From: Cyanophora paradoxa CCMP329
Taxonomy: Eukaryota > Plantae > Glaucophyta
Direction: 5' to 3'
Assembly (NCBI GenBank): GCA_004431415.1
Contig: QPMI01000222.1
Location: 62,001-126,000 of the forward strand
DNA: 64,000 nt
The translations under genes were made by a program, and so were the position numbers. The notes beneath the pieces were generated by a model. That model searched no databases, was not told where the DNA came from, and worked only from the letters and a program-made list of their open reading frames with translations. Positions 1 to 56,669 of this stretch are shown here, in pieces. Every line of letters starts with the position of its first letter. Position 1 is the stretch's first letter.

Positions 1-3000
1 CTGCAGCTCGCGCCGCAGCCGGTCTGCCTCCCCCTCTCGCTCCCCCTCGGGACCGCCGGCCGGCGAGGCCGGCGGCGGCGGCGCACCCGCACCCGCAAGC
101 TGCCCGCGCGCCTCGTCCCGCTCCCGCCGGTACCGCGCCGCCTGCTGCTCGGCCTTCCGCAGGGACGCCTTTGCCTCGAGCTCCCACTCCGCCCGCGCCG
201 CCGCCAGGTCGGGGACCGGGGCCGCCGGGCCACCGGGGCGGCAGCCGCCGCCGACGCCGACGCGGCCTCCTCCTCGAGCGCGCGGGCCCGCCCCTCGAGG
301 GCCTCGGCGCGCGCCGCCGCCTCGCGGGCGGCGCGCTCGGCCCCCGCGAGGCGCCGGCGGAGCTCGTCGGCCTCGGCGGCGGCTGCGGCGGCGTCGCGCT
401 CGTGGCGCTCGGCGGCCCCCGGGCCTCCTCCCGCATGGTCTCCAGCTCGAGCAGCAGGTCCTGCTGGGCCTCCCGCAGCCGCTCCACCTCCTCCTCGTCG
501 TACCCCTCCTCCGCCGGCCGCGCCGCCGCGACCGCGGCCGCGCCGCCCTCGGCGGAGGCCGCGGCCGCCGCCGCGGCCGCCTCCTCGGCGAGCCGACGCT
601 CGGCCTCGGCGACCCGCAGGGCCTCCCGCGCGTCGGCCAGCTGGCGGCGCAGCTCGTCGGCCTCCTCCGCCGCCTCGCGCCGCGCCCGCTCCGCCCGCTG
701 CGCCTCGCGCCGCAGCGCCGCCGCCTCCTCGCCGGCGGCCTCCGCGGCGCGCTCGGCGCCCTCGCGCCCCCGGGCGAGCTCGGCCGAGGCGGCCTCCCAC
801 TCGGCCTTCTCCTCCGCGTGCGCGAACTCGAGCTCCGTCAGCTGCCCGCACACCGCCTCGTGCTGCCTCTCCAGCTCCCGCGCCCCGCGCGCCTCCGACC
901 GCGCCGCCTCCGCCTCCGACCGGGCCGCCTCCAGCTCCCCGCGGGCCGCCTCCAGCTCGGCGCGGGCCGCCTCGAGCTCGGCGCGGGCCTCCCCCGCCGC
1001 CGCCTCCGCCGCGCCGCGCGCCTCGGCCAGCGCGGCGTTCGCCTGGCGCAGCGCCTCCAGCTCGGCCTCGGCCGCCGCCGCCGCCGCCTGGCGCGCCTTC
1101 GCTTCGCCCTTGGCGGCCCCGCGCTGGGATGCCTCGGCGGAGCGGAGCGCCTCCCGCTCCGCCGCCGCCAGCTGCTTCCTCAGCTCCTTCACCTGAGGGG
1201 CGGGCCGTCAGCGCGGGGCGGGGCGGGGGCCAGGGACGCGGCTCCTCTGACCTCGCGCTCGAGCTGGGCCTTCTCGCCCTGCGCCTGCGTCTTCTCCTGG
1301 AGGGCGGCGCGCAGCTTGTCCTGGACCTCCTGCGCCTTCCCGCGCTCCTTCGCCACCGCCTTCGCCTCCCGCTCCGCCGTCGCCAGCGCCGCGTCCGCCT
1401 CCCGCCGCGTCGACGCCGCCTTGTTCAGCTCGCGCCGCAGCCCCGCCGCCTCCTCGCGCGCCGCCTCAGCCTCCCGCTCGCGCTCCGCGAGCGCGCCGCG
1501 CGCCGCCTCCGCCTCCGCCTCCGCCGCGGCGGCGCGCGCCTCGGCCGCCTCCGCGCGGGACTCGGCGGCGGCGAGGGCCCCGCGGAGCTCCTCGAGGGCC
1601 CCCGCAGAGACGCCGCCTCGGCCGCCGCCGCCTCGGCCCGCTCGAGGGCCGCGGCAGCCGCCGCCTCGGCCCGCGCGAGCTGCGCGCCGTGCGACCCGAG
1701 CTGCAGCTGCGCCTCCCGCAGGTCCCCCAGCATCGCGTCCCGCCCGGCCGCCGCCGCCTCCCGCTCTGCCTCGGCCGCCTCCGCCCGCGCCTCGGCCGCC
1801 GCCGCCGCCTCGCGGGCCGCCCGCAGCGCGGCGGCGCCCTCGCTGAGGTCGCGGAGGAGGCGCGAGCGCTCCTCCTCGAGCTCCTCGGCGCGGGCGAGGC
1901 CGGAGTGCAGCTCGGCGTCGGCGCACTCGACCTCGCGGAGCCGCGCGAGCAGCTGCGCGGCGGCGCCCCGCTGCACGACCAGCTCCGCCTCCGCCTCCGC
2001 CGCCGCCCGCGCGTTCTCCTCCGCCGCCGCCCGCCGCCTCCGCTCCTCCTCCGCCTCGCGCCGCAGCCGCGCGGCCTCCTGCGCCGCCCGGGCCAGCTCC
2101 GCCCGCGCCGCGTCGGCCTCGGCGCGCAGCCGATCCGCCTCGGCCGCCTGCGCGGCCCGAAGGCCCCGCTCCTCTTCCAGCGCCCGGGCCAGCCCCGCCG
2201 CCTCCTCGCGCGCCCGCTCCAGCTCAGCTGCGGCGGCGGCGGCCGCCGCCTCGCCGGCGCCGGACTCCTCCCCGCGGCGTGCCCAGTCGTCGCCGTCGAC
2301 GAAAGACTCGGAGCCGCCGCTGCGGTCGCCGCTGCTGCCCGAGCTGCCGGTGCCGCGCCGCTCGCCGCGCCGCCGCCCCCGCCGCTCGGAGACGTACGAG
2401 TAGGGGTCGCGGCCCTCGCCGCCGCCCTCCTCGTCCTCCTCCTCACCCTCCTCCCCGTCGTCCTCGGCGATGGCATCCATCGCCGGCCGCTTGCGGGAGC
2501 GCCCCGCCGGCGCCGCCCGCCCTCGCCCTCGGCGGCCCCCGCCGCTTCCGCGTCCGCGTCGGCCGGCTCGCCGCCCTCGGAGCCGGCCTCGGACGGGCGC
2601 GCCACGGACTCGGACTCGGAGGGCCGCGCCTGCGAGGCCGCCGACGGCCGCAGCCTGCTGAAGTCCGGCAGCGGCGGCAGCGGCTGCGCGCGCGCGCGTC
2701 TCAGCGCGGCGGAACGCAGCGCGAGGAGGCGCCGCCCGGCCGGCCCCTGGGCACCTGGAGGGGCCCGGAGGGCTCCTTGGCCCCGCTCCACGTCATGCGG
2801 CGGTGCCGCTTCTGCTTGCGCTCCGCGGCCGCCTCGACGCCGGACTCGCCGCCCGCCGTCTCCGCGTGCGCCAGCCCCGTCCCCACGCTCCTGTTGAACT
2901 CGACGATCTGCGGCGGGGCGGCGGGAGGGCGGGGCCGAGTCAGGACGAGGAAGGGGGCGCGGCCGGCCCCGGCCCCTTTGGGCGGACGGACCGTGCGCAT

Positions 3001-4910
3001 GACCTCGAGCTTCTGCGTGAGGGCGCGGCGCGTGGCGAGCTCCTCCTCGAGGCGCGCCGTCATCGCCGCGTTCGCCTTCGCCATCTCGTCGTTCGCCTGA
3101 GAGCGAAGTTAGTTCGAAGTGAGGCCTCCTCCCTTCCCCGCCCCGCCCCGCCCCTGCCCCCGCGCACGGCCTCCTTGGCAGCGACCTCCTGCCTGAGCCG
3201 CTCCTCCTCCTGCTGCTTCTTTCCGGCGCTCTGCGAAGCGGGGCGGGGGGCTCCACGCCTCAGCAGCGAGCGAGCGCAGGCCGTAGGGGGGCGAGCGAGC
3301 GGGCGCACCTCGGCCTCGGCGAGCTTGCTGCGGAGCTCGTGGACCTCCCGCTGCAGCTTCTTCATCATCGACCGGTCGTCCATGAACTGCGCGCGTGCGG
3401 GGCGGCGGCGAGTGAGCGAGCGAGCCGAGCGAGCGAGAGGAAGGAAGGAGGCGCGCGCGCGCGCCTCGTTGATGGTCGCGTTGTTCTTGATCTTCTTGGC
3501 GCGCGAGGCGAAGCTGAGCGTCGAGAGCGACTCGTCGAGGTTGCGCGCCGACGGGCTGATCGTGCACACGATCGCCGTCTTCGAGTTGCCGCCCAGCGAG
3601 TGCTCCAGCATCCGCGTCAGCTTCGAGTCGCGGTACGGCACGTGCCCGCCCCTGCGCACGCTTGAGCTCGGATGACGACGGCGAGCCGGAGAGGCGCGAG
3701 GGCGGGGCGGACTTGGCCGAAACGCCGTCGGCGAGCTTCTCGATACAGCGGGAGAGCGTGAAGAGGGACTGGTTGATGTTGCAGCCCTCGCGCAGCGAGG
3801 CCGCGTTGTTGAGCGTCCCCGACTTGTCCGCGCGCTCGGAGCCGGCCAGATCCACGAGGTTGAGCACGCCCGTGCGCACCGCCCCGTCCGGCTCGCCCTC
3901 GCCGCCCTGCGCCCGCTCGCGGGACTCCACGAACTGCCGCCACCGCCGCGGATCAAATTCGGATCAAATTCGAGTTCGAAACCGGACGCGGGCCGACCAC
4001 GCGGAAGATGCTGTGGCTGCGGCTGCTGGCCTCGTTCATCTTCGTGGCGCGCACGTGCCGGCGCTCTGCGGGCGGGTCGGCGGAGGCGCGGCGGGGCGAG
4101 AGCGGCGCCGCGTACGGTTGCCCTCCTGCAGCTTGTCGAAGACCTGGTCCAGGCTCGTGAGCACGACCTCGACGGCGTTCTCGACCACGACACGCTGCGC
4201 GGGGAGCGTTTCGGCGCGTTTTCCAGGAGGCGGCGCGGCGCGCGGGGCGCGCCTTGTCCCCGTTGTCGATTGACTCGCGCAGCTCGCGGGGCTTCCCATC
4301 GTCCAGCAGGTCCCGGATCGTCTCATTGTAGATCTCGAGGAACTGCATGCGGATGAGCCACTCCCTGTTTTGTTGCTGCGGCCTCTTGTCGTCAGCTGCG
4401 GCTCCGGGCCCGGCGTCGGCCCACCCGCACCTGGACCACGAGGTCGAACAGCTCCCGCATGGCAAGCGGGACGATACCCTGCTGGTGCGCGCTGTCCCTA
4501 ACGCCCATCATCGTGTGCGTCTTCCCGCTCCCTGTCTGCCCGTAGCAGAAAATCGTGCCTGCCAGAGTCCGGCTCGGGAACAAGCCGGAAGCGGGCCGCC
4601 GCGGCCGCGGCGCAGCTTACCGTTGAAACCCTGTGCCACCGAGTGAACGATGTGCTGGGCCACTGTCTTGTAGACCTCCTCGTTCGCTGCGGCTCCCTTG
4701 AAGACATTGTCTGCGGCGGGTCGGCCGGCGCTCGATCTACTGCGGCGGGCGGGGCGCACCAAACGGGAAGGAGCGAACTACACGGCCCTTCTCATCGGTC
4801 TGGGCTATGAGATTGTGCTCAAAGTGCCAAGGAATCGTCTGGCCCAGCCGGTCCTTCAACTCGGCCTGGTTCGGCGGCCGCACGCGGACGGACACAGAGA
4901 TGCTCTCCAT
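1..4910 (-). CDS. Kinesin-7 (CENP-E-like) motor with long coiled-coil tail; multi-exon, 3' end runs off the window
   Basis: Spliced minus-strand peptides: [34 protein letters not shown] (P-loop), [27 protein letters not shown] (switch I), [11 protein letters not shown] (switch II), [43 protein letters not shown], and RHRRMTW after the neck, followed by an Ala/Glu/Arg coiled coil. A few frame breaks in the tail. Confidence 0.9.
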
Positions 4911-41735: not shown

Positions 41736-44700
41736 TTACAATGGCCAGTTATATCTGTTTGCATACGACCCGAAATCGGAGCACTTTTGTTGCGCGGCGG
41801 CGTTTAGTATGGACGCCAACCAGCAGTAAAGTTGCTTAGGAAGGCTGGCCTTTCGCGGGGGCGGCGGGCCCGTGTACGCGGCCGCCTGCGTCCTGGCCGT
41901 CACTGTCGTCGCGCCGCCGAAGCCGGCGCTGCTCTTCACCCTCGCCGTGCACGTGTACGTCGTGTCGGGCGTCGCGTCCGTGAACAGGAACTCGGCAACG
42001 ATGTGCGGCGGGACGGAGCGGTCCATGTAGTAGAGGTCCGGGTCCCACGAGTCCAGGGACTGCCCGAGCGCGGGCATTCGGGGTTTCACGCGCGGCTGGA
42101 TGCTGAAGTTCATGGGCGCCGATCCGCCCAGAACCTTCGCGCCCGTCGCGTCGGGCACACATGTGACGTTCGCCTCCGTCGCGAGCGCGTCGCCGCTGCG
42201 GCGGTTGTAGACGAAGACGCGCAGCTCCGTCCCCTTCCACGACCCCGCCTCCACGACCGGCTTGCTCGGAGGGGCGACGGCGCTCGCGGCGCCGGACGCA
42301 GGCCGGCGGACGCGCTTGGTGGCGGACCCGGCGCTGGCGCACGCGGTCGTCGCGACGTGGGTGGTGCGGTTGAACGAGGAGCCGTAGACGCCGGCCAGCT
42401 CGTCGGCGTCGAAGCCGCGGCTGACGACGCCGCAGCTGGCGCGAAGCAGCGCCTCGCGGGACACGTCCATCACGCGGATCGCGTACTTTGCCTCGCTCGT
42501 CAGGTAGCGCATCGCGATGTACGACCTGCGACGTCGGTGCTGAGACGGGCGCCGCAGCGCGCCCAACGCTGACGGCGGCGCACCCGTCGTCGGCGATGGA
42601 GACGTAGGCGGGGACGGGGGCGAGGAGGTTGACGAAGGAGGCGTCGACGGGGACGGGCCGCGCGTTGTCCGCCGCCTTGTCGCCCAGCTCGAGATCGTAT
42701 ATCTGCGCGCGGGTGAGGCGCGCGGCGGGACTCGACTTCGACTCTCACGCGGACCTGGAGAAACGTGGTCGTCTTCCACACCGCCACGAACCGGCCTGCG
42801 CGGATACGTCGGCTCAGCAAACGGTCGCATGTGCACAAGACGCGGCGCAGAATTTGAAAGCTGCCGGACCGTTGCGGGAGGAGCGCGGCGGGTACTTCGA
42901 GAAGGCGATGAGGATATCGGGGCTCTGCGGGCGCCCCGCGAGCGCGTCGAACGACTTGTAGCCCCGCGCGCCCGTCGCGTCCACCAGCCACAGGACCGAG
43001 GCGGAGGCGGAGGAGACGTACACGGAGGCGTCCGGGAAGCCGGGCCCGCTCCGCTGGTTCTTGGTGACGCGGTGCTTCGCCTCGCGATACTTGGTGCAGA
43101 CGCGAGGCGGGAAGATCTCGCGTGCTTTCGCGAGCGCCTCTGGGGGGCAGGGCGGGTCGGGCAGCGTGGCGTCGGGCGCGGCGGCGCGCGTCCTCTGCTC
43201 GACGTGCACGGCGCGGCTGGAGTCGAGCGCGCCGTTGACGACGGGGACGGCGTAGACGGCCGCGCGCATGTCGAGGACGGCGACGGAGCCCCAGAAGAGG
43301 ACCCGCCGGCAGGCGCGCTGCTTGGGGCCCCCCCAGGTCGGCACGACGGCCGGGCTGGGCGACGCCCACGCGGTGGACTGCGCGCGGATTCAACGTTGGC
43401 CTATCTGAATGGGCGTGAATTTTAAGTGAGATGGCGCGCACCGTGGCAGACGGGCGCGACGCCAAGAGCACCACGACGCGCTCGCCGAACACGCCGTACG
43501 CGTCGTTGTGAAAAGCGAACCCCCCGAAGAACTCTCCGTTGTACATCGGCCAAGTGACGCCCCCGTGACCGTCGCCCGCGTGATAGAACTGCGCGTCCAC
43601 AATATTTATCCAAGTGAATGTCGTTCGAAGGAGGAGCGTATACGTATAATTACAAACGTACATATGAGAAGCAAAAGACGCAGTTAAGCCCGTCGCTGGA
43701 GAATCCCGCCGCGTGCTGGACATCTGACGTCGACGAGGTTTCGAAAAGGTGCGATTGCATGAGAAATATATGCATGAAACAAAGGCACTCTACACATTTA
43801 GAAAAGTGCATATATAGATATTGCAAGCTTGAAACACGCATCCGCATGCGCTGTGCACATGCTCTACAATAATACGAGCGCGCGCACCATTCAAAAGGAT
43901 GTAGTGACCAAAAGAAGGTAGTGTCCATCCATCATTGGGCGGAAACGTGTTCCGGTGTGCAGCGTTCATCTCAAAAACGGAAACCGCAGTACTCGCGACT
44001 GGCACACCCTGCAGCATATATAGTCAAATCAGAGAAGAACATCCGAACGGCCGCGAGTGTGAGCGGTGCGAGCCTGCTCGAGCGGGTAGACGACGCCGGC
44101 CATGGCGGCCCAGGCCGAGCCGTGGAACGCCAGCGGCTCGACGTGCTCTTGCGCGCTCGGGAAGTACTGAGCGGGCAGGCGGAAACGCCCTCCAGCGTCG
44201 GTCGGCCCGTCCGTCGCCTCCAAGCCGAAGGACAATTCGGGGTTGGAGGTGTCTTTGCGGCCGAGGATGCGGTCGAATCCGCCCGTCGGGGCGGCCTCGG
44301 CGGCGCCCATGAAAGGCGCGAACGCTTCCGAGAACGTGACGTCGTAGGGGCCTGAGGCATCCGCAGTCCATGGTACTGCCGCCGCATCGGTCCTCCACGT
44401 CCTGCGAGCAAAAACGTAGCTTCAGCGAACAATAAAAGCCGTACTAAGGAATCGAAACGGAGAGACCATGTCTTGGCAGGGGCGATGCGCGAGGGCTGGT
44501 TGTCCACGCAGCGGCCGTCGCCCGCGAACAGCGTCCCTCCCGTCGCGCTCAAAGCGAGCAGGTCGCCCGTCGGCGGGTGCACTCCGAAAACTTCGATTTC
44601 GCAAAAGGCACGATCGATATCAGACTTCCAATGAACTCGGACCGCAGATAATTTGAAAAGGCAAAGCCGCACAGCGGTAGTTCTTCGAGCCGTCGTTGCA

Positions 44701-47700
44701 GTCGGAGCACAGCGCGCCGTCCACGCTTGTCGCCCTGCAGCCATGACCAGTGAGTTTTGTTCGCGCCTTGAGTGAACAATGAAACGCCGCACGACGCAAG
44801 CGTGCATGCTATTAGCCCGCTCACCTTCGGGATCCGTCGTTGCCGAGCGTGTGCTGCAGGGTCTTCAGGCCGGTCGGCCTGATCACCTGCGTGGCCTGTG
44901 TCCGGTCCCACCTGTAAGCGCTCACATCCCCGCTGGGGGCCTCGTCGACTCCCCAGTACGCGGCGCGCTCCTGGCCAGCGACCAGGACGTGGCACATGGT
45001 CGGGCTCCTGAGAAAGAGCGCGCGGTTGGGGCCGAGGCTGTCGCGGGTTGCAGAGGGCGCGTCCATCTTCTCGATCCACGACCACGCCGCGGGTGCCGGA
45101 TCCAAGAACGAGGCGTCTCCGCCGTTGGATAGCTCCGCATCCAGGACGCTCGGTCCCTGTATACGTAGAACCGGCCGAGCGCAATGAGAGGAAAAGCAGC
45201 GACGCAAAGAAAACGAATCGAAGCGCGGGACCTTCTTGCGGAGCGGGGTGCCCGTGGCGACGCTCTTGAGCGCCAGCTGCGCGAAGTTTCCGGCGTCGTC
45301 GGCGGCCACGAGGAGCGGCCCGGAGGCGAGCTGCATGTGCCGGACGGTCCGCACGCCGCCCGACAGCGACACCACCTCCGCCTGCGCATGCCGCGCCAGC
45401 GCGCTTCAGAGACACGAGCAGCTGCAAGAACCAAGGCCTTCGAATGCTCAACGGGCACCATCTTCGTTGTCAGGAGATCTTGCGGCGCGCGTAGGTCGTA
45501 GAACTGGATGGCTCCGGCGGAGGCGCCCACAGCGACGAACGGCCCGCTGCCGATGATCGAGATCTGAGCGTTGACGCCGGGAATGAGTGGGACCCGATGA
45601 GCTGCGGCCGGAACAGCTCGCTCACCGACATGGCCTTGCGGCGGAGATCAAACCGCGAGCCGGTGTAGTCGACGCCGCAATCCAGCTCCGCAATCGTGCT
45701 ATTGTTTATATGACAGGTATCGATGGCCGTCGAATTTGTATCAGCGCTGTATACGTAGCATCAAATAGAATGGAAACAGCGCACCGGTATCCGTGCCCGG
45801 GGAGGACTTTGGGTAATTCATTATATGGATACTCTATGAACGGCATGAAAACCAGCTGCTGGCGGATGCACACGCCGCTGTACTTGTGCATCGCCTTGCG
45901 GAGCAGCAGCGCGCCGTAGCCACTAGAGAAACTGCCGTCGCTGTTCGTGTTAACGTTGACGTCGTGCGCGTCCTTCGCGATTCCGATGAGAACAAGGTCC
46001 GGGTCCGCGGCCTTGACGTTGTTCACGTCCTCGTTCAGAAAGTCGGGGTTCGTCCGCTTCGTGAAGACGCACGGGGCCGAATTGAAAAGCTGAGTCTTTG
46101 CGCGCCAAGCGTTGGAGCCGCTAGGATCCCAGCAGGTCAGAGATGCAAAGTTCTGCTCCAGCGGCTCCAACTCCCGTGCGACATCCCCGTAAATCCGCAA
46201 GACACTCTCTTCGAGAGCACCGCTGGTCCATCGCAAATCATCCCTGCGCAAGCATGTATTCAACGCTTTTAACACGCTGCATTTGATGTTCAAAAGAGAG
46301 GCGACCGCACCTGAAGAAGTGGTACGAGACGGCCGGGCTGATATCGCCGAAAAGCGAGAAGGGCTGATACGAGTGGCCCGGCCCGTGCACCTGGAAGACG
46401 CCCCCAATCCAGGAGCAGTTGTCGGCCACGTCGATGTCCGTAATGCCGAGCCATAACGACATGATCCCATGCTGTAGATCCTGGATCTCGCCCGCTTGAT
46501 CTCTCTGCTGCTTCGATGCCAGCACATCGGCAGCCGATTTGCTCGCGTCCTTCAGCACCGACATTGGTATGAGGATGACCGTCAGCGTTTTCAACATGTG
46601 GTCCTGAAAGCCGTCGAACGTGTAAACCGCGCCTACAGCGAGAAACTCGACGCCGTCGCGGCTGCACGTGCGCTGCGAGACAGCGATGGGGTTCGGGAAC
46701 TGGTAGCCGAACGCCATCTCCGCACGCCACTTCCCGGCTTCATCATCGGTTCCGGGGTTCTCCGTCAGTTCGACTGGTGTCCACGGCTCGATGGTGAAGT
46801 GGCACAGCTCGGGCGTGCTCGGCAGATACCCTGCCGTGCCGTGCCGAAGTAAGCGATCAAATCCGGCGCATTCCAACGTTTCTGCCGTGTCATTCGGACC
46901 TTGGTACAGGGAAGCGGCGTCGGCGAACGCGAGCTTGCCGCGGTGGATGCGCATGACGTTGCGGGGCCTCGCGGCCGCCTTTGCCGTCTCCGTGTTCCTG
47001 AAGATGTCTTCCACGCCGCGCCACGGCGTCGCGTTGAACGTCTCTCCCGTGAAGAACAGCACGAGGTCCGACGCTGACGCAACGTGAGATGTGGTTTCAT
47101 CAGTCTTTGGACGATATATATATAGCTGAGCATGTACCGACGAACACGTCGTGGGTCTCAAGCAGGAAGCTGCCCGCCCCCTCCTTCTTGAGGCAGCCGC
47201 GCTCCTCGGGGCGCGACTTGCTGTACACGAAGACCGTCGAGGTCGTCCTCGGCAGGCACCTGGCGACGGAGGGGGTCGGCAAAGGGTCGGCAATGAAGTG
47301 GGAATGAAAAGGGAAGCGCTAGCGCTCAAACCCATGCAAGCCCATGACCGGGATTTCAGCTAACGCTAGCAATGAAAGGGTCGGGCGAAGGAAATAGAAC
47401 GTGAGCTGCAGCACTCGAACACAGGATCTGGTCCGGATTCAAAGAAACGCACCCGATGCCGTCGGCGTCCTGCGCACCCGATGCCGTCGGCGTCCTGCGC
47501 AGAGGTGCTGCATACAGGGACCTCGGGTCCAAGACGTCGGACGTGCATCTGGGGCGGACGGGAGTGTGAGAGGCTCGCGTGCCACGGTGTGCAGAAACGA
47601 CGGTACACGAGTGCTGGAAATTAATCGGCCGGCAATTTCTTTCGCAGCAGTATTCTGCAAAAGATCTAGAGCACTCGTTACTGCCACGGACGGTGACTGC

Positions 47701-50700
47701 CACTATTTCGGCAAATTTTGACTGCCACTATTTCGGCAATTTTTGACTGCCACTATTTCGGCAATTTTTGAACGCGAACCAAGACGTCGCCGTAGTCGTC
47801 GATGAAGAAGCGGACGGCGCCGAGCGAGAAGGCCCAGAAGCTCGTCTTGTTTGCAGAGCCGGCGAGCACGTCCCTGATCGTGTAGACGAGGTTGTTCGCG
47901 TCATCAAAGACGTGACCCAGCAGGTGCATCTGGTCGGGCGGCGTCGGCCGAGTGGGATCAAAGAGAGATCTAAAACGGGCCGCGTTCGCACCTGGAATGT
48001 GTGGATTGGGCTTGTGGGCACATCGACGAAGAGGTTCGTCGGGGCGACGATGCCGATGCCGGCGAGGAGCGTGAGGGTCCCGCGGGGAGATGTCGCCGTG
48101 AAAGTCTGCCGCGCCGTCGGCCGCGGGTGAGAATTCGAAAGCAAAGGGCGCAGAGCTAGCGCTCAAGGCGGCCGATCCCGCCGCGCGCACCTGGAAGTCG
48201 TAGAACGAGCTCTTCGTGGCGAAGTCCGCGATGGTGGCGCTGCCGACCTCGAGCAGCGACCGGCGGCGGGCGGAGGCGGGGGTGGAGCCGCCCGTCCAGA
48301 GGTAGCCGCTGGCGCTCGACTCGAGGACGGAGCGGAGCGTCGACTCGGCGGCGGTCGTCAGCGCCGCGTTCGTGCCGCTCCCCGCCGACGCGAGCGCCTC
48401 GATGGCGAAGAGCAGCGCCGACTCGGGGTCCGATCCGCCGCTCGAGAGCGCCGCCGAGATCGTCTGCCGGTCCTCCGCCTCTGCCAGCGCCGCCTGCGCC
48501 GCAACGAGCGCCTTGGCCGTCGCGTTCTGCGCTACTTGCGCCGCCACGAGCGCCTTTGCCGTCTCGTTCTGCGCCACCTGCGCCGTGACGAGCGCCTTGG
48601 CCGTGTCGTTCTGCGAGGAGATGGCCAGCAGCTCGTTCGACTTGGCGATGGCGCTCTGGCTCTTGGCCTCCGCCTCGGCGGTCATGGCCCGCACGAGATT
48701 CGCAAGCGCCTCGTCCCTCCGCTGGTCGGCGAGCAGCGACGCGTTCAGCGCCCTCGCCGCGTTGAGGATCGCCAGCGCCTCCTGCTCCTTGGCCCGCTGC
48801 GCCTCCTCCGTCGCCCGCCGCGACTCCTCCGTGGCCCGCCGCGACTCCTCCGTGGCCCGCCGCGACTGCGTCTCCGCCTCCGTCTTCTGCTTCTCCGCTT
48901 CTATCCTCTGCTTCTCCGCTTCCATCGTCTGCTTCTCCGCTTCGGTCTTTTGTTGGGCGGCGCTGACTGCGCGAGCAAGACGTTCAGAACACGCTGACTG
49001 AATTCGAAACACGGATCGCACTCGCGAAAATAATGGACACAATCAACGCCGCCAGGAGCACTGGACGCGCGAGGGCGTCAGTGGCAACACGCAGACCGAA
49101 TCGCACTTTTTAATTTGGATTACCGGCCGCGATGGTAGCCACGACGATCGCAGTCGTCCGCCGCTTCTGGACCTCCTGCTTAAGACTGTTGTGGATAAGC
49201 ACCACCTGCCGCCGGCGCCAAGCTCGTTAGATGGCAGGCCCACAATCGGAAGCGCGCCCTCAAAGCGGGCACGCCTGCTCGGGTGTCGGCTTGAGGAACG
49301 GCGCGCCGGCACCGGCCGCCGCTTGCCGCTTGCCGAGGTGCGCCGGGACGCCAGCGTCCCGGCTGGACCCAGGCCGCGACGGCCAGAGGCGGGAGAGGGA
49401 GGTCGGGATGTGGAACATGTCCGCGACCTGGCAAGCGAAGCGCGGCACAGCGTCAGCTGCAGGGCCGAGGCGACCGGGGCCGTCGAGGGGGAGCTAGAGC
49501 TCGCCGTGTAGTTGGCCTTCTTCGCCGCCTCGGGGTCCGCCTTGCGCAGCCACTCGAACGCCTCCTCCAGCGCGAAGCCGTGCTAGCGCGCTCTCAGCGA
49601 GAGCACAGAGACGGAGCCGATCGCGAATCGAAGCAAACAAAAGCAACTGACGCGAACCAGGAGAACGGCCTCGGCCTTTGTGCGGTTCTCCTTTGGGACG
49701 TCGTTCAGCTGCACGCCCTTCTCGTCCATCCACTTCGTACCCGCGTCGAAGCCCAGCGCTGCCGGCGGACGCGGCTCAGAGGGCGCTTTCGAGACGGACG
49801 GGGCCGGCGCCGGCGCTGGCGCGCCTTCCTTGTACTTGTCGGCGCGCAGCGTGAGCTGCGTGTGCAGCCGGGCCGCCTCCGCGTCGAACTGCGTCCCGGC
49901 GGCGGCGGCGTCGGCGAGCGGCGCCGGCTCCGAAATTCCGAATTCTCGAAATTCGAAGCGCACGCGGATGGCGGCCTCCATGTCGTCGCAGGCGCGCACG
50001 AAGGCGGGGTCGGCGGAGAGCTTCGGCAGCGCCTCCGGGCTCTGCTTGTGCAGCGCCGGGAACGGAATCTTCTGCCTGCGCGCGCGCGAGCCCGGCCCGT
50101 CTCCGTCCGAAATCTAGACGGAAATCTAGACGGAAATCTAGACGGCCGTGCATGCGCACCAGGAGTTGACCGCTTCGAGGCACATCTTCTGGCGCCTGCG
50201 TAGCCGTGCAGAAGGCGTGAGCAGCAGAACGACGGGCTCTGCGCGCGGCGGGCGGGGCGGGGGCCGTCGGACCGGAGGAAGCCGCGCTGGGACTCGGTGG
50301 CGTCGTCGTCGAGGTCGTCGGGGAGGGGCGGGACGGGCGCCAGCTCGATGATGACCACGCGCTTGTGCTGCGCGCACGCGTACTCGAACTCGTCGATGCT
50401 GCGCCCGGCCCCGCAGGGCGGGGGCGCCGTCAGCGCCGGCGCGAGAACGCGCGCGGGGGCCGCGAATCCCCTCACCAGTATTGCGACTGGATCCAGTCTG
50501 CGATCGAAGGGCTTCAGAGCGCAAACGCGACAGACGCGGGCTTGGCATCACACACCCGGAGTCAGCAGGACCAGCATTGTCGACGCGCCCTTGATGGCTG
50601 AGCGCGCGCGCGTGAGGCCAGGCCGGGGGCGCGCGGGGCCGTGCCCTATCGAATGCATATAATCCAAGCACCGGCGGCGATGGCCTTGCCCCTGAAGAGC

Positions 50701-53047
50701 GCGTGAGCAATTGCAAGCGCAAGGAAGCTAAGGCACGCGGGGCGCCGAGGCCGGGGCCGGCGGGGCGCACCACTGGACGCCCTTGAGGATGCCGTTCTCT
50801 GCCGACACGTCGACCCAGTACTGCCGCCGCCGCCGACGCCGCCGTCAGCGCGAGCCGCGGCCGCCGCGCGCGCGAGCAGACGCGGCGAAGGCTGAGGCTG
50901 AGGCCGCGGCAAAGGCGCACTGTGAGGCCGCGATCCTTGAGGATTCGGGTGACGACCTCCATCTCGGGCGTCTGAAGCCGCCTGCGCAGGCGGGGTCGGG
51001 CCCGGGCCCCGGTCGTGGAGGGGCGGGGCGGGGCGGCCCCGCGCCGCGCGCGGCCGCGGCGCACCTGTAGGAGACCATGACGTCCAGCGCCTTGATCGGC
51101 GTCTGCGCGTCTGCGGGGCGGGGCGGGGCGTGAGTGCCGGCCGGCAGCGCGGGCGACGCGGGGCGCGGGGGCACCGGGCTCCACGACGGAGGTCCCCTGG
51201 GGCTGCGAGGGCGGCCCGGGCCGGGGCGGCGTGAGCTGCGGGCCGGCGCGGGACCAAGCTTCGAGGCGGGGCGGGGCGGGGCGGGGCGGACGCGGATCTT
51301 GGCGGCGAGGTCCTGCACCGCCTTCGCGTACGCGGCGCCTGGGAGCGAGGGGCAGTCGGCGCCGGAGGGGCGAGGGGCGTGCTGGGCTCTCGGCGGGCGC
51401 GGGCACCTTGCTGGCCCTGGGCGTGGATCTCGTCGACGCGGCCCAGGACGCCCAGCGCCGCCGCCACACGCCCCGGGTCCGCCTGCCTTCCGCATGGGCG
51501 GGACGGCGGGGGCGGGGGCGGGGGCGGCGGGCAGACGCGTACTGTGGAGGCGGCGGGGAGGGCGGCGGCGAGGGCGTGGAGGGTCTGGCCGCCCGGCGCG
51601 AAGGAAACGAGGCGCTTGCCGAGCCACGCCGCGTGCTCCAGCTCCCGCACGCACGCCCTGCGCCCCGCACGAGGCTCATGATCAGCGGCTTTGGGCGGCG
51701 GCTGGACAGGGCGAGCGCGTACGGGGACTGGAGCCACTCTGAGGGGACGATGGGGAGTGAGGCGCGAGGAGGGCGCGGGGGCGCGGGGCCGGGGCGCGGG
51801 CCGGGGCGGCACCGGGGGTGGCGAGGACGACGAGGCACTCGGCGCCCTCGATGGCCGCCGAGATAGCCTTGCGCCTGCGCGCCGGCCCGGCCCGGGCTCA
51901 GCCGGCGCGCCCGGCGCCGCGGGCGGGCGGGCGGGCGGGGGGGGCGGGGCGCGCCTGGCGAGGTTGGCGATCTCGCCGTCCAGCTCCGCCACGTCGTCGT
52001 CGTACCAGCACTGCCGCGCGCGGCGGCACCCGCCGGCGTCAGCGGGGCGAGGGCCGAGGGGCGAGTGCGGGAGGGGGTGCAAGGAGGGGAAGGGGGGGGG
52101 GGGCGGGGAGGGGGGGCGGGAGGGGAGCGGGGGGAGGAGATACAGCAGCGAGGCCGGGGTACGGGGGTGGGGAGGGAAGAGAAGGTAGAGCAGCGAGGTC
52201 GGGGGGGGGGGGGGGGGATAACAGCGAGGCCGGGGTACGCGGGGTGTGGAAGGGGGAGGGGAAGAGAAGGGAGAGCAGCGAGGTCGGGGCGGTGTAGAGG
52301 GGGGGGGGGGGGGGGAATAGGGCAGAAGGGGAAGGCGGGGGGGCGGGGGGGAGGAGGGGGTCTCAAGCTTAAGCGAAGGTTACGGGAGGGGCACCTTGAG
52401 GCCGTGGCGCTCGAGGGCGGCGGCGAGGGACGAGGCGGCGGCGACGCACGCGCCCCGCGCGAAGCTCAGCACCCTGCGCCCCGCTCGGCGCCCGCGGCCC
52501 CGCCGGAGGGGTACCGGGGCGGACGCACGCGTCGTGGTAGTGGATGGGGGCCTCCGGCCGCGGGTCCGGCAGCGGCGCCGCGCTGTAGTTCCGCGCCCGC
52601 CGCTTCCGCGCCGCAGGAGGGGCGGCCTGCGGGGCCCCGGCCGCGTCCGGCGCGCGCGTCAGAGGCGCGAGCGCGATCGCACACGGTGCGACGGGGCGCG
52701 CACCGGCGGGGCGCTGCTGTGGAACTGGACGGCCGCAGGGGCGGGAGCCGGCGGCGGCTTGGCGTCGCCCTGCGGGGGCGGGGGCGCGGCGCGTCACGGG
52801 CGCACGGCGAGCGTGGGCGCCCAGCGGGGCGCGCTCGCGCCTGAAGGACGTCAACGTGCACGTCCTCCGCGTCCAGCGACGGCGCCGCTCCGGCGCTCCA
52901 CGATGACGACGTCATTTGCATGCAGAGCTGGCCTGGCCTGGGCGAGTTCTGCATCTGCAGGAACTCCTCGGCAGGATCCGCGGCCGCGGGTGCCGCTGCT
53001 GTACATGTCGGCGCCGGCGCCCAAGACCCCGACGCTGACGTCGGCAT
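41736..53047 (-). CDS. Tandem TIR-TIR / TM / coiled coil / beta-propeller-like / FN3-like receptor, many exons
   Basis: TIR1 YHDAVLSFARG...LERHGLKCWYD...RKAISAAIEGAECLVVLATPEWLQSPACVRELEHAAWLGKRLV; TIR2 LDVMVSYRR...LKDRGLTYWVD...WGKAIAAAIKGASTMLVLLTPDWIQSQYCIDEFEYACAQHKRVVIIEL; TM TAIVVATIAAVLLAALIVSIIFA (about 49150-49020); AEKQ coiled coil; DPESALLFAIEA; beta-strand-rich exons (VAVGASAGAIQFYD); REALLRASCGVVSRGF; TDATPDTTYTCTARVKSSAGFG. Splicing across 47.8-47.3 kb is less certain. Confidence 0.8.
47695..47771. repeat. Three tandem 25-bp repeats in an intron
   Basis: gactgccactatttcggcaa(a/t)tttt x3, directly abutting with no spacers. Confidence 0.95.
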
Positions 53048-53782
53048 GATCGCCGGCCAAGCTGAGGGCGAGCCGCGCGCGCGCCGGACGCTCTTGGAGA
53101 TCGCCCCGCCCGCGTCCGCTGATTAGCTTGCAATTGCTAGCGCTGCGTCGACGTCAGGCGCTGCGAGCTCTAGCTTGCTGGTGAGCTTGCTGGCAAACTG
53201 CTGCGATCAGTCGAGCTCGAGCTCAGGCGTTGCAATTTTTGCCACCGCGCGCTTCGGGGCACGCATGCGTGATCTGCAGATTCTGCACTCGTGCCGGTGC
53301 GACTCGTGCGAGACAGGCAGGGCCTCACGACTTGGACTCGCGCGACTTAGCACGTTAACAGGCTAATAGCAGCTCCTCAGCGACCCGGCGGTTAGGCCCG
53401 TTAGGGGCGCGCGCGCCGCGGCGCGCCGCGCGGTACCGGATCCGGAATCGTGAGTCGTGATCATGACGTCGACGGCCACGGACGGCCCACGGTCCGCCCA
53501 CCGTCCAGACGTGACGGACCCTGGAGGTCGGTGACGCTTTGCTTCTACCCCTGCAGACCTCGGGTACAGAAACGCTGCGTTCGCAATTCCACGCACGCAG
53601 AACGCTCGGACTGGACAGCCGCCGCGGTAGCCCGCGGTTTGTCGTGCTTCTCCGGTGCCATGGAGCTAAGCTAGACATCCAGATCCACCGACCCAGCCCG
53701 AGCCCGTTTTAGGCCGACTTTAGCTATCGCCGCGCGAGGGCCTCAGCGAGCGGGCGGATCGGCCTTCAAGAGCGGCGGCAGC

Positions 53783-56669
53783 ATGGCGGAGGCGAGCTCT
53801 GAAACCGCCGCCCCGCAGCCGGCATCGGCCTCTCAAGCCGCAGCGCCGCCGCCTGCCGCGGAGGCGGCGCAGGGCGCAGCAGAGCTGCCGCGCCCCTCTA
53901 GCGCCGCGACCGTTAGCATGGGCCCCAGCGGCGCCAAGAAGAAGAGCCGCGCGGCCAAGGACGGCAAAGTCGACCCGCTCGCGTTCCTCGACATGGTCGT
54001 CATTGCGGATGCGGAGGAGCCGCAGGAGGAGGAGGAGGAAGAGGAAGAGGACTCTGGCGCCGAGGGGGAAGGCGGCTCCCCGGGCGAGGAGGGGGACGCG
54101 CAGCCGCGGCAGCTGAAGAGTCTCGGGAAGAGCAAGAGCTTCGCTTCCGGGAAGCTCATAAAGGTCGGGAGCAAGAAGCAGCTGGACATGCCGGAGCTCG
54201 AGCTGAAGAACATCGCGAGGCCGCCGCGCGCGCGCGACCACGCGACGACGCGCGAACGCGGCGACAACCGGCGCCGCTCCCTCGCGACCGACGTCCCCGC
54301 CAACCTCCCCCAGGCACGGCCGCCGCCGCTCCGCGCTCGCTCGTCCCCCGCCCGCCCGCCCGCCTCGCGCTGAGCGTGGGGCGCGGGGCGCGCAGCCGAC
54401 GTTCATCGAGGAGGTGCGCGAGTTCTACCAGCAGCACCGGGCGGCCAGCACGCGCCGCGAGGTCGCCGCCGAGCGCGCCGCGCACCTCCAGGCGAGCCAG
54501 AGCCTTGCGCCGCCTCCGCCCCGGAACCTGACGCGCGGCAGGCGCTGGAGGCGGCGGGGCTCATCGAGTCGGGGCAGGCCCAGTCGGCCGCGACCGAAGA
54601 GATGCAGCGCGCCGCCGACGCCTACAGCGACATGCGCGCACCTCCCCCCCCCCTCTTCCCCTCACCTGATCTGATCTGACCTCCCCGCAGCAACCTGCTG
54701 CGGCGGGACATGCTCCGCTTCGACAAAGGGGTCTCGGACGCCATCGGGCGGGTGTGGGCGCTCGTGGACGCGGCGGGGGCGGGGCGGGTGGACCGCTGGC
54801 AGTACCGCGACTTCTTCATGCTCCTCTACCGAGGGTTGCACGAGGTGCGGGGGGCGCCGGGGCGGGCCGCGGCGGGCGGGGGGCGGGCCGGGCCGGGCCG
54901 GGCCGGGCTCTAGGGCCCTGTGAGACTTCGAGGGCGGTCCGGTTGGGAGGGAGCGTTTATGGCGGGCCTCGCAGGAGTGGGACGAGGGCCAGGCGGGGCA
55001 GCACGCGCGGGAGGACTGGGAGATCGACCGCCGCGGCACCGACTTCGTCGACCGCGCCCGCTTCAAGCTCTCCCTCTTCCAGGTGCGAGATGGACAGAGA
55101 GAGAGGAGTTCTAGGAGACCCGCCTCGCTCTCTCTCTCTCCCTCTTCCGGCTCGCTCTCATCTCCGCGCTCCCCCCTCCATCTCAGCTCGCCGACGCCTG
55201 GACGGAGTCCATCGCCGCCCCGGAGTGCGCCGTACCCCCCGCGCCCCCCGCCCCCCTACCCCCCACCCTCATTCTATCTCTTTCTGAGCGCCGAGGGGGG
55301 TACAGGTACATCCGCTTCCTGGAGCGGGTGTACGAGCGGGCGACGAAGCCGGACCCCGCCACCGGCAAGCCCGTCCTCCGCCAGGTCCGAGGGGGGGTTG
55401 GGGGGGGGGGGGGAAGGAGAAGGGGGGGAGGAGATAGAAGGGGCGGGGCCTAAGGGGCGAGAGGGGCGAGAGGAGCCCTCCGACAGGTCCGAGGGGCGGG
55501 GGGGGGAAGGGGGAGGGGAGGAGAAGAGGGGGGGGGGGTCGAATGGATGGATAGAAGGGGACGCGCTTCGCCCCCCAGGCCCCCGCCCCCGCTCGCCCCG
55601 ACCCGACCCGGTCTCACCCGATCCACCCGCTCGCCAGTGGTTCGAGCTGGAGCCCGGGGGCATGCTACCCACCGAGGAGGAGCTCGCCTCGCTCGGTACC
55701 CCCCCCCCGCTCCCCCCTCCCCCCCCGCCTACGTCTCACCCTCTTCGTTCGCAGGGATCTCGATCGAGGGGCCGCTGGGCGCCCTGCCCGAGCTTCAGCT
55801 GGGCGAGTCGCACCTCCCCGCCGACGGGCCCAAGCTCGAGGTGCGAGAGGCTTCAGATTTGATCCCGCGGCCCAGATTCGATCTGAGCGCCTCTCCTCTC
55901 CTCGTTGCAGCTGGCGAAAGTTCGCCTGGCTGGGTTCGGAGGCGGCGCGGCGCACAGGCCCGACTGCCCCTGCGTCCGGTGCCAGGTGCGCCGCACCCCT
56001 CCCGCTGCGGCACCGGTCCCAGCAAACGCGCCGCCCCTCAGAAACGGCGGGCGATGGCGGCGAAGGAGGAGGCGCTGCGCCGGCAGCGGCGGAAGCTCAT
56101 CGGCTTCGGCCGCGTCGAGGTGCTTGGCTTGCTTGCTTGCCGACTCCTTCGGCTTCGCTTTGCTTCCCGGCTTCCTTCCTGACAGCGCGCGCGCGCAGGA
56201 CGCGCCGTCGGCGCGGCGGGAGGCGTCGCAGCCGCTGAACCACTCCCGCGCCGGCAGCCGCCGGCCCTCGACCTCCTACTCCAACGTGCATCCCCCCTCT
56301 CCCCCCCTCCCCCTTCTACCCCCCCTGACACCCCCCCCCCCCCCCCCCCTACAGCTGGAGCAGGCGCCGAGGAGCTCACGGCGGGCCTCCGTCATGGGCC
56401 ACCCGGCCTCCTCCGCCTCCATCGTCGAGCGGTGCTGCGGCCTCTGCGTCTTCCCTCCCATCTCTTCTTCTGCTCGAACTAAGCTCCGCCGCGCAGGGCG
56501 GGGTCGATCCGGCGGGACCGCGGGGCGGCGATCGAGCTGGCGGCCGGCGCCGCCGCCGAGCGCATTATGGCGGCCGCTATGGCCGGCCGGCCGCCCCTCT
56601 CCGGCGGCCGCCGCATCTCCGCCCGGGTCCAGCAGGGCGGGACCGGAGGGGCGCTGGACTCGCCGGCGC

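Follow-up and report, generated by a model that had tools for sequence, protein, structure and literature searches.

The freshwater glaucophyte alga Cyanophora paradoxa CCMP329 carries a gene that probably encodes a ligand-gated, NAD+-cleaving receptor-enzyme, a single-pass type II membrane protein with two TIR domains predicted to lie in the cytosol and a large outer part. The gene lies on the minus strand of the window analysed here, a stretch of 64,000 nucleotides (nt) of contig QPMI01000222.1 (assembly GCA_004431415.1, positions 62,001 to 126,000). Its frame was most likely acquired from bacteria, with introns gained, the TIR domain duplicated and the outer part rebuilt, as judged from sequence comparison. 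Database searches and profile scans were run with single exons or in-frame stretches, one at a time, whereas the joined gene model was used for the reading frame, hydropathy, composition, flanking charges, N-glycosylation sequons and the comparison of the two TIR domains and their intron positions.

Two TIR domains on a bacterial frame

The inner part, the membrane helix and the stalk are laid out as follows (aa, amino acids; TM, transmembrane).

52529..53047, minus: exons 1-3, a low-complexity N-terminus rich in Pro and Ala, which has a short basic patch and no hydrophobic signal peptide
51292..52545, minus: TIR domain 1 (TIR1), aa ~120-274, reaching from the end of exon 3 into exon 10, from the family profile
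51642..51644, minus: Glu200, catalytic position of TIR1, aligned with the invariant E74 in alignment A1
49964..51110, minus: TIR domain 2 (TIR2), aa ~292-455, exons 12-20, from the family profile
50389..50391, minus: Glu367, catalytic position of TIR2, aligned with the invariant E74 in alignment A1
49149..49888, minus: exons 21-25, post-TIR helices followed by a pre-TM helix that ends in KRR; there are two insertions compared with bacteria
48965..49148, minus: single TM helix, aa 607-628, from hydropathy, interrupted by introns 25 and 26
48449..48964, minus: coiled-coil stalk of ~170 aa, predicted to be outside, with short repeats retaining N-x-T sequons
48314..48478, minus: putative pre-propeller helical hairpin, end of exon 27, a weak match (1/200 shuffles against a 9-sequence hairpin profile)
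48251..48268, minus: RRRSLL at aa 861, from the sequence, which we take to be a candidate subtilase processing site

The bacterial proteins that served for comparison were fetched from GTDB with an 11-codon degenerate pattern taken from exon 21. Nearly all of the 120 loci belong to one family, found mainly in Chloroflexota, Cyanobacteriota and Actinomycetota, whose members have in order a TIR_2 domain, a linker, a basic patch, a TM helix about 67 residues past the motif, a coil and usually WD40 blades. The TM helix follows TIR_2 within 160 aa in 103 of 111 loci, and WD40 blades come after it in 77 of 102. A glutamate at the catalytic position (E74) is invariant in the 67 aligned members, and the mean charge is +3.6 before the TM helix and 0 after it. 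The databases annotate these proteins just as 'TIR domain-containing protein', and the ESM Atlas holds several TIR_2-WD40 clusters with no specific name. AlphaFold models the bacterial frame (pLDDT 96) as the TIR domain, two helices and then one long helix that runs unbroken from the cytosol through the basic patch and the membrane into the coil. The best matches of this frame, in sequence and in structure, include the TIR domains of Cat1, Hydra TRR-2, SARM1, SPARTA, AbTir, TLR and MyD88.

Seven algal exons (6, 8, 12, 16, 18, 23 and 25) match the family profile in the bacterial order, at scores reached by no more than one of 200 shuffles. For TIR1, exons 6 and 8 (0/200 each) fall at profile positions 50-68 and 76-92, and exon 8, which bears Glu200, reaches E=3e-6 in pairwise hhalign. 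For TIR2, exons 12, 16 and 18 (0-1/200) are colinear with the profile, and exon 18, with Glu367, gives E=4e-4. Exons 23 and 25 (0/200) extend the match into the linker independently of the search pattern, whereas the match of exon 21 is circular, the pattern having been derived from it. Exons 28-47 do not match the family profile. A Pfam scan of the three TIR exons long enough for it returned no TIR match, TIR_2 included; single exons are too short for Pfam, and the TIR assignment rests on the bacterial family profile. A WD40-like match of exon 8 in the PDB was dismissed as a chance effect of a 12-residue repeat.

An initial annotation, made from the letters of the window, had spliced two TIR folds by hand with glutamate at the catalytic position of each (CVRELEHA and CIDEFEYA). 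Both motifs stand in frame, at E200 and E367, where the family profile also matches, so that this claim is borne out by the bacterial profile and not by Pfam; the sizes of 16-80 nt that had been given for the TIR exons should read 16-126 nt. NADase activity of TIR domains requires a glutamate in the pocket of self-associating TIRs (PMC9806590), and such a residue is present at the catalytic position of both algal domains.

With the same anatomy and origin, the two TIRs might instead be non-enzymatic scaffolds, recruiting other algal TIR proteins in the manner of animal TLR and MyD88. The bacterial TIR profile and model match the TIRs of TLR and MyD88 well too, and the first strand and loop of TIR1 have diverged. 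Nevertheless, the glutamate that is invariant in bacteria has been retained in both algal domains although their overall identity is low, and we regard such a scaffold role as unlikely. The reading as a receptor-enzyme is the one followed below.

TIR1 and TIR2 have three introns in common, the pairs 4/13, 5/14 and 6/16 being equal in position and phase. These shared introns indicate that the TIR domain was most likely duplicated after intron gain, in the alga. A few bacterial family members likewise have two or three TIRs, and the algal duplication is most likely independent of them.

The gap of about 150 aa between TIR2 and the TM helix is fully accounted for by the linker. No NB-ARC, NACHT or nSTAND NTPase was found in the exon scans, and the idea that the linker could be a STAND remnant was dropped as unsupported, since a search with it returned TIR proteins only. 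When the in-frame stretch 49658-50074 was compared by phmmer with 1.84 billion proteins, no true relative was found, the sole match, a Calx-beta repeat protein, being spurious; nothing was found for this stretch in a word-indexed search or in plasmids. The end of exon 27 gave chance matches only against plasmids.

The initial annotation had placed a hydrophobic helix after KRR, then a coiled coil, and had taken the N-terminus to be inside. The helix is the only strongly hydrophobic segment of the protein (Kyte-Doolittle 19-mer peak of 3.06 at aa 607, the runner-up being 1.71), and the coiled coil is found in the spliced frame as the stalk. The net charge is +3 before the helix and 0 after it, and the outer part has 14 N-glycosylation sequons where 8.4 are expected, a modest excess. 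A cytosolic N-terminus is also favoured by the roughly 600 residues, folded domains included, that come before a signal anchor. An N-in, C-out topology (type II) is therefore likely, because the flanking charges, the lack of an N-terminal signal, the sequon excess and the charge bias of the bacterial relatives point the same way.

Gene structure, transcripts and paralogues

The gene is real, and its reading as one gene is supported. The model was built from a three-frame reading of the minus strand combined with a scan for splice sites, and three of its features are needed here.

41736..53047, minus: whole gene, a 47-exon hand model of 2,432 aa (2,389 aa without exon 41)
47549..47779, minus: intron 29 (231 nt), the suspected split point, spliced in an RNA-type contig
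43888..44008, minus: exon 41, doubtful, with intron-like codon use and possibly inside a 358-nt intron (43716-44073)

The hand-spliced frame comprises 47 exons and 46 introns and runs for 7,299 nt from an ATG at 53047 to a stop at 41736 with no internal stop. Donors are GT in 40 introns and GC in six, acceptors are CAG in 44, and most introns measure 52-100 nt, sizes that agree with the published mean of 86 bp for Cyanophora paradoxa (PMC6704402). The GC content at third codon positions (GC3) is 0.88, which favours coding. When exons 1-27 and 47 are used to train a codon model, its synonymous codon score favours the model frame in 18 of the other 19, outer exons, and almost all introns score negative.

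Sequencing reads were compared with positions 47050-53049, using three runs guessed to be RNA and one that behaves as DNA. In run X6, a contig of 233 nt connects 47548 with 47780 (CT..AC; depth 3.4; the shorter side has 63 letters), a joint that is absent from the DNA run; the initial annotation had feared a split into two genes near 47.7 kb, which this joint refutes. A contig of run X7 spans exon 18, including Glu367, without mismatch and departs from the genome at both splice sites, and part of the stalk (48743-48842) falls in an RNA-type contig. A third such contig, covering exons 21-22, has a spacing that fits intron 21, but it is partly diverged and probably derives from a paralogue. The DNA run agrees with most of 47050-50820 and is free of insertions and deletions there.

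It is still conceivable, though quite improbable, that the far 3' half lies outside the functional product, because there are two genes or because the locus is a decaying paralogue with early-ending transcripts. The RNA comparison does not reach introns 30-43 (junctions below 47.5 kb), expression is very low, and the use of an alternative donor of intron 30, at 47452, closes the frame at codon 1039. Codon bias is near neutral in exons 32-34 and intron-like in exon 41, and the public annotation of a paralogue begins at the equivalent of exon 44. Against this stand the single open frame across 46 mostly canonical short introns, which stays open if exon 41 is removed, the splicing of the 231-nt intron and the indel-free DNA run. 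Moreover, the widest gap of the 3' half is this same intron (or 358 nt without exon 41), to be compared with an intergenic distance that averages 770 bp (PMC6704402), and gene predictors are said there to cope badly with this species' genes.

Within this single gene, the second, frame-breaking donor at 47452 was generated by a 25-nt tandem duplication (47453-47502) that copies the end of exon 30. A separate 25-nt tandem duplication, at about 47695-47770, forms a three-copy repeat within intron 29. Intron 4 (384 nt; 52020-52390) contains a C-rich low-complexity tract which draws unrelated short contigs of run X10.

The gene has close paralogues. At 50271-50404 the DNA run contains exon 18 a second time, as a near-identical copy that shows four differences; together with the diverged contig of exons 21-22, this copy indicates that a very close paralogue or allele exists. 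A search for paralogues, as the initial annotation had advised, also led to the Cyanophora paradoxa protein tig00000630_g2734 in EukProt, to which the last exon is 78% identical. The longer isoform of the paralogue spans exons 44-47, with identical junctions at introns 44-46. Further relatives were not found with the paralogue (P0003) as query, and no relative turned up in viral contigs or elsewhere in the 64-kb window.

The outer region

Beyond the stalk, four features were delimited.

42870..48105, minus: outer region (exons 28-44) without an assigned family; GC content is lower in exons and introns alike
46352..46537, minus: C-type-lectin-like motif in exon 32, a lead only (phmmer against the PDB, E=0.47, mannose receptor 2)
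42450..42890, minus: a pair of degenerate WD40-like blades that reach from the end of exon 44 into the start of exon 47, recognised on paralogue P0003
41880..42173, minus: probable terminal fibronectin type III (FN3) domain (Pfam fn3 E=0.17, and 0.007 in the paralogue, both short of the cut-off)

A large propeller is plausible in this part. The two blades on P0003 reach E=6e-4 in hhalign with a probability of 29% (4/100 shuffles), and a blade profile run over exons 28-47 gave nothing convincing. Support for the large propeller of the initial annotation is thus weak. The FN3-like end that it had described is probable, the fn3 match being consistent though below the Pfam cut-off (in the PDB, integrin beta-4 and RPTP-mu match best, E 0.14-0.9). 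The claim that the outer part is built on something other than leucine-rich repeats (LRR) held, as Pfam found no LRR family in the paralogue or in the long outer exons.

GC3 in the outer middle exons is 0.81-0.83 as against 0.92, and this lower GC content suggests faster change or later insertion. The outer middle is possibly a mosaic or fast-changing ectodomain. Introns 29-44 (42800-47800) mostly have 42-66% GC, compared with 70-96% for most introns near the gene's 5' end. Exon 32 had no Pfam match, and the ESM Atlas gave nothing usable for this exon or for the paralogue; rows of phage-baseplate proteins returned by the Atlas were rejected, with scores of 0.80 or less. The fold predicted for P0003 from its single sequence had a pLDDT of 34.

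Proposed mechanism, relatives and significance

In the mechanism that we propose, the stalk would carry the outer head at a distance of about 25 nm, and the head would bind a repetitive or multivalent ligand, for example the surface of a microbe or a virus. When the stalks cluster or shift, the change would travel through a continuous helix of stalk, TM and juxtamembrane segments and bring about self-association of the TIRs, and two TIRs per chain would cut the number of receptors needed. The assembled TIRs would cleave NAD+, producing an ADP-ribose-type signal or draining NAD+, and either the product or the loss could start a defence or stress response.

Several points weigh against this proposal. 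A conserved glutamate does not prove NADase activity. The motif used to fetch the bacterial proteins combined exon 21 with a Trp expected in bacterial TIR-WD40 proteins, which makes the family set a motif-selected one, and the exons were scored against the profile of one TIR family only. About 1,100 outer residues matched no named family in Pfam, PHROGs, phage and PDB scans. The depth of the RNA-type reads is just 2-3.5, in runs that are only guessed to be RNA. No partner gene is universal in the bacterial family, most members lack a conserved partner, and the family has no system-level match in PADLOC or NCBIfam.

Such a gated TIR enzyme could also serve a purpose other than immunity, responding to a physical or developmental cue (contact, integrity of the cell cover, or shedding of the head at RRRSLL) or acting in endomembranes. 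The long stalk, the FN3 domain and the candidate processing motif would suit such a role, as would the bacterial members, which bear generic sensors such as CHASE2 and mostly lack a defence-type neighbour. Yet the characterised catalytic TIRs in the cited literature act in immunity or cell death (PMC9806590, 10.64898/2025.12.03.692087), and the existence of close paralogues and the distinct composition of the outer middle would suit ligand-driven turnover. A non-immune role thus appears rather doubtful to us.

For the algal protein, the closest parallel is the bacterial TIR_2-TM-WD40 family, which it resembles in the order of the parts, the TIR motifs, the glutamate, the post-TIR helices, the basic patch, the single TM helix, the coil and the putative hairpin. 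It differs from this family in length (about 2,400 aa, the bacterial median being 941), in its 46 introns, in a much longer stalk and in having unassigned sequence, degenerate blades and FN3 where canonical WD40 is not detectable.

Animal Toll-like and IL-1 receptors are type I proteins with a C-terminal, generally non-catalytic TIR and an LRR or immunoglobulin (Ig) ectodomain. They share with the algal protein one TM helix, presumed activation by clustering and, if the sidedness predicted for the alga from charges and sequons holds, an outer sensor with a cytosolic TIR. In contrast to Toll-like receptors, the algal protein has tandem TIRs (aa 120-455) with the glutamate, N-terminal to the sole TM helix, no signal peptide and no LRR. 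The product as read from its sequence is not a Toll-like receptor, since it lacks an LRR, is predicted to have the opposite topology and takes its frame from the bacterial family, and the label of an inverted Toll-like receptor given by the initial annotation has to be abandoned.

SARM1, plant TNL and TIR-only proteins, ThsB, Cat1 and SPARTA TIR-APAZ likewise combine the TIR fold with the catalytic glutamate. Unlike the algal protein, all of these sense inside the cell and are without a membrane span and a large outer sensor. The algal protein has no SAM, ARM or NB-ARC domain and no effector gene (the neighbouring algal genes were not scanned). TIR-STAND-WD40 proteins, either bacterial and NLR-like or the TIR-NBARC-WD40 of Chondrus crispus, similarly have an N-terminal TIR and a C-terminal propeller-type sensor (PMC9806590, PMC7145615). 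In these proteins, however, an NTPase switch occupies the place of the algal TM helix and stalk; since the exon scans found no NTPase, the algal protein is not an NLR.

The bacterial family is itself diverse. Some members end in CHASE2, located behind the TM helix, or in TPR instead of WD40; CHASE2 is an extracellular sensor domain. The TIR and helical hairpin also stand before NACHT, in that case with no TM helix (L035, L091, L092; checked with Pfam for L035 and L092), CHASE2 (L011, L024, L051, L061) or TPR (L099). The TIR with its hairpin looks like a portable effector head. Among plasmids, the TIR module matched an Agrobacterium gene annotated as a peptidoglycan endopeptidase. A second TIR-TM paralogue lies alongside in tandem at L041, L049 and L103, as is often the case in the family.

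In 4 of the 120 loci, the gene directly upstream on the same strand encodes a DUF4231/SLATT protein (three loci) or a SLOG protein (one).

L003:4322-7932, same strand as the TIR-TM gene: SLATT or LSDAT SLOG neighbour
L056:7259-7828, same strand as the TIR-TM gene: SLATT or LSDAT SLOG neighbour
L066:3442-3987, same strand as the TIR-TM gene: SLATT or LSDAT SLOG neighbour
L002:2594-3370, same strand as the TIR-TM gene: SLATT or LSDAT SLOG neighbour

Signals made by TIRs are known to be received by SLOG and SLATT (10.64898/2025.12.03.692087), and the arrangement is suggestive of candidate membrane-spanning Thoeris-like systems. One of the DUF4231/SLATT neighbours is a fusion that also has C39 peptidase and GH19 domains.

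More broadly, the gene may stand for a glaucophyte family of bacteria-derived type II catalytic tandem-TIR surface immune receptors with variable ectodomains, which would turn recognition outside the cell into an NAD+-derived messenger; we put forward this undescribed class only tentatively. If it exists, the bacterial relatives would be unrecognised envelope-spanning sensors feeding SLOG or SLATT effectors. To our knowledge, the catalytic TIRs described so far sense intracellularly, and in the surface TIR receptors known so far (TLR, IL-1R) the TIRs serve as scaffolds. The gap between the two would be closed by a receptor that spans the membrane and has enzymatic TIRs. The gene also offers a testable handle on a large, little-studied bacterial family and bears on the repeated acquisition of TIR signalling by eukaryotes.

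In the literature searched, which was thin in subscription journals, we found no paper on these proteins in Cyanophora or glaucophytes and no description of a TIR receptor in the glaucophyte branch of Archaeplastida; the Cyanophora genome paper does not mention TIR, Toll or receptor (PMC6704402). Short exons fragment these genes in automatic annotation, so that algal TIR surveys would have missed them.

Two neighbours were noticed in the window. At ~1400-4200 on the minus strand lies a gene rich in introns, in which kinesin motor motifs and a long coiled coil were seen. On the plus strand, a gene starts at 53783, head-to-head with the receptor gene and about 740 nt from its ATG, and this distance suggests that the promoter region may be common to both genes.

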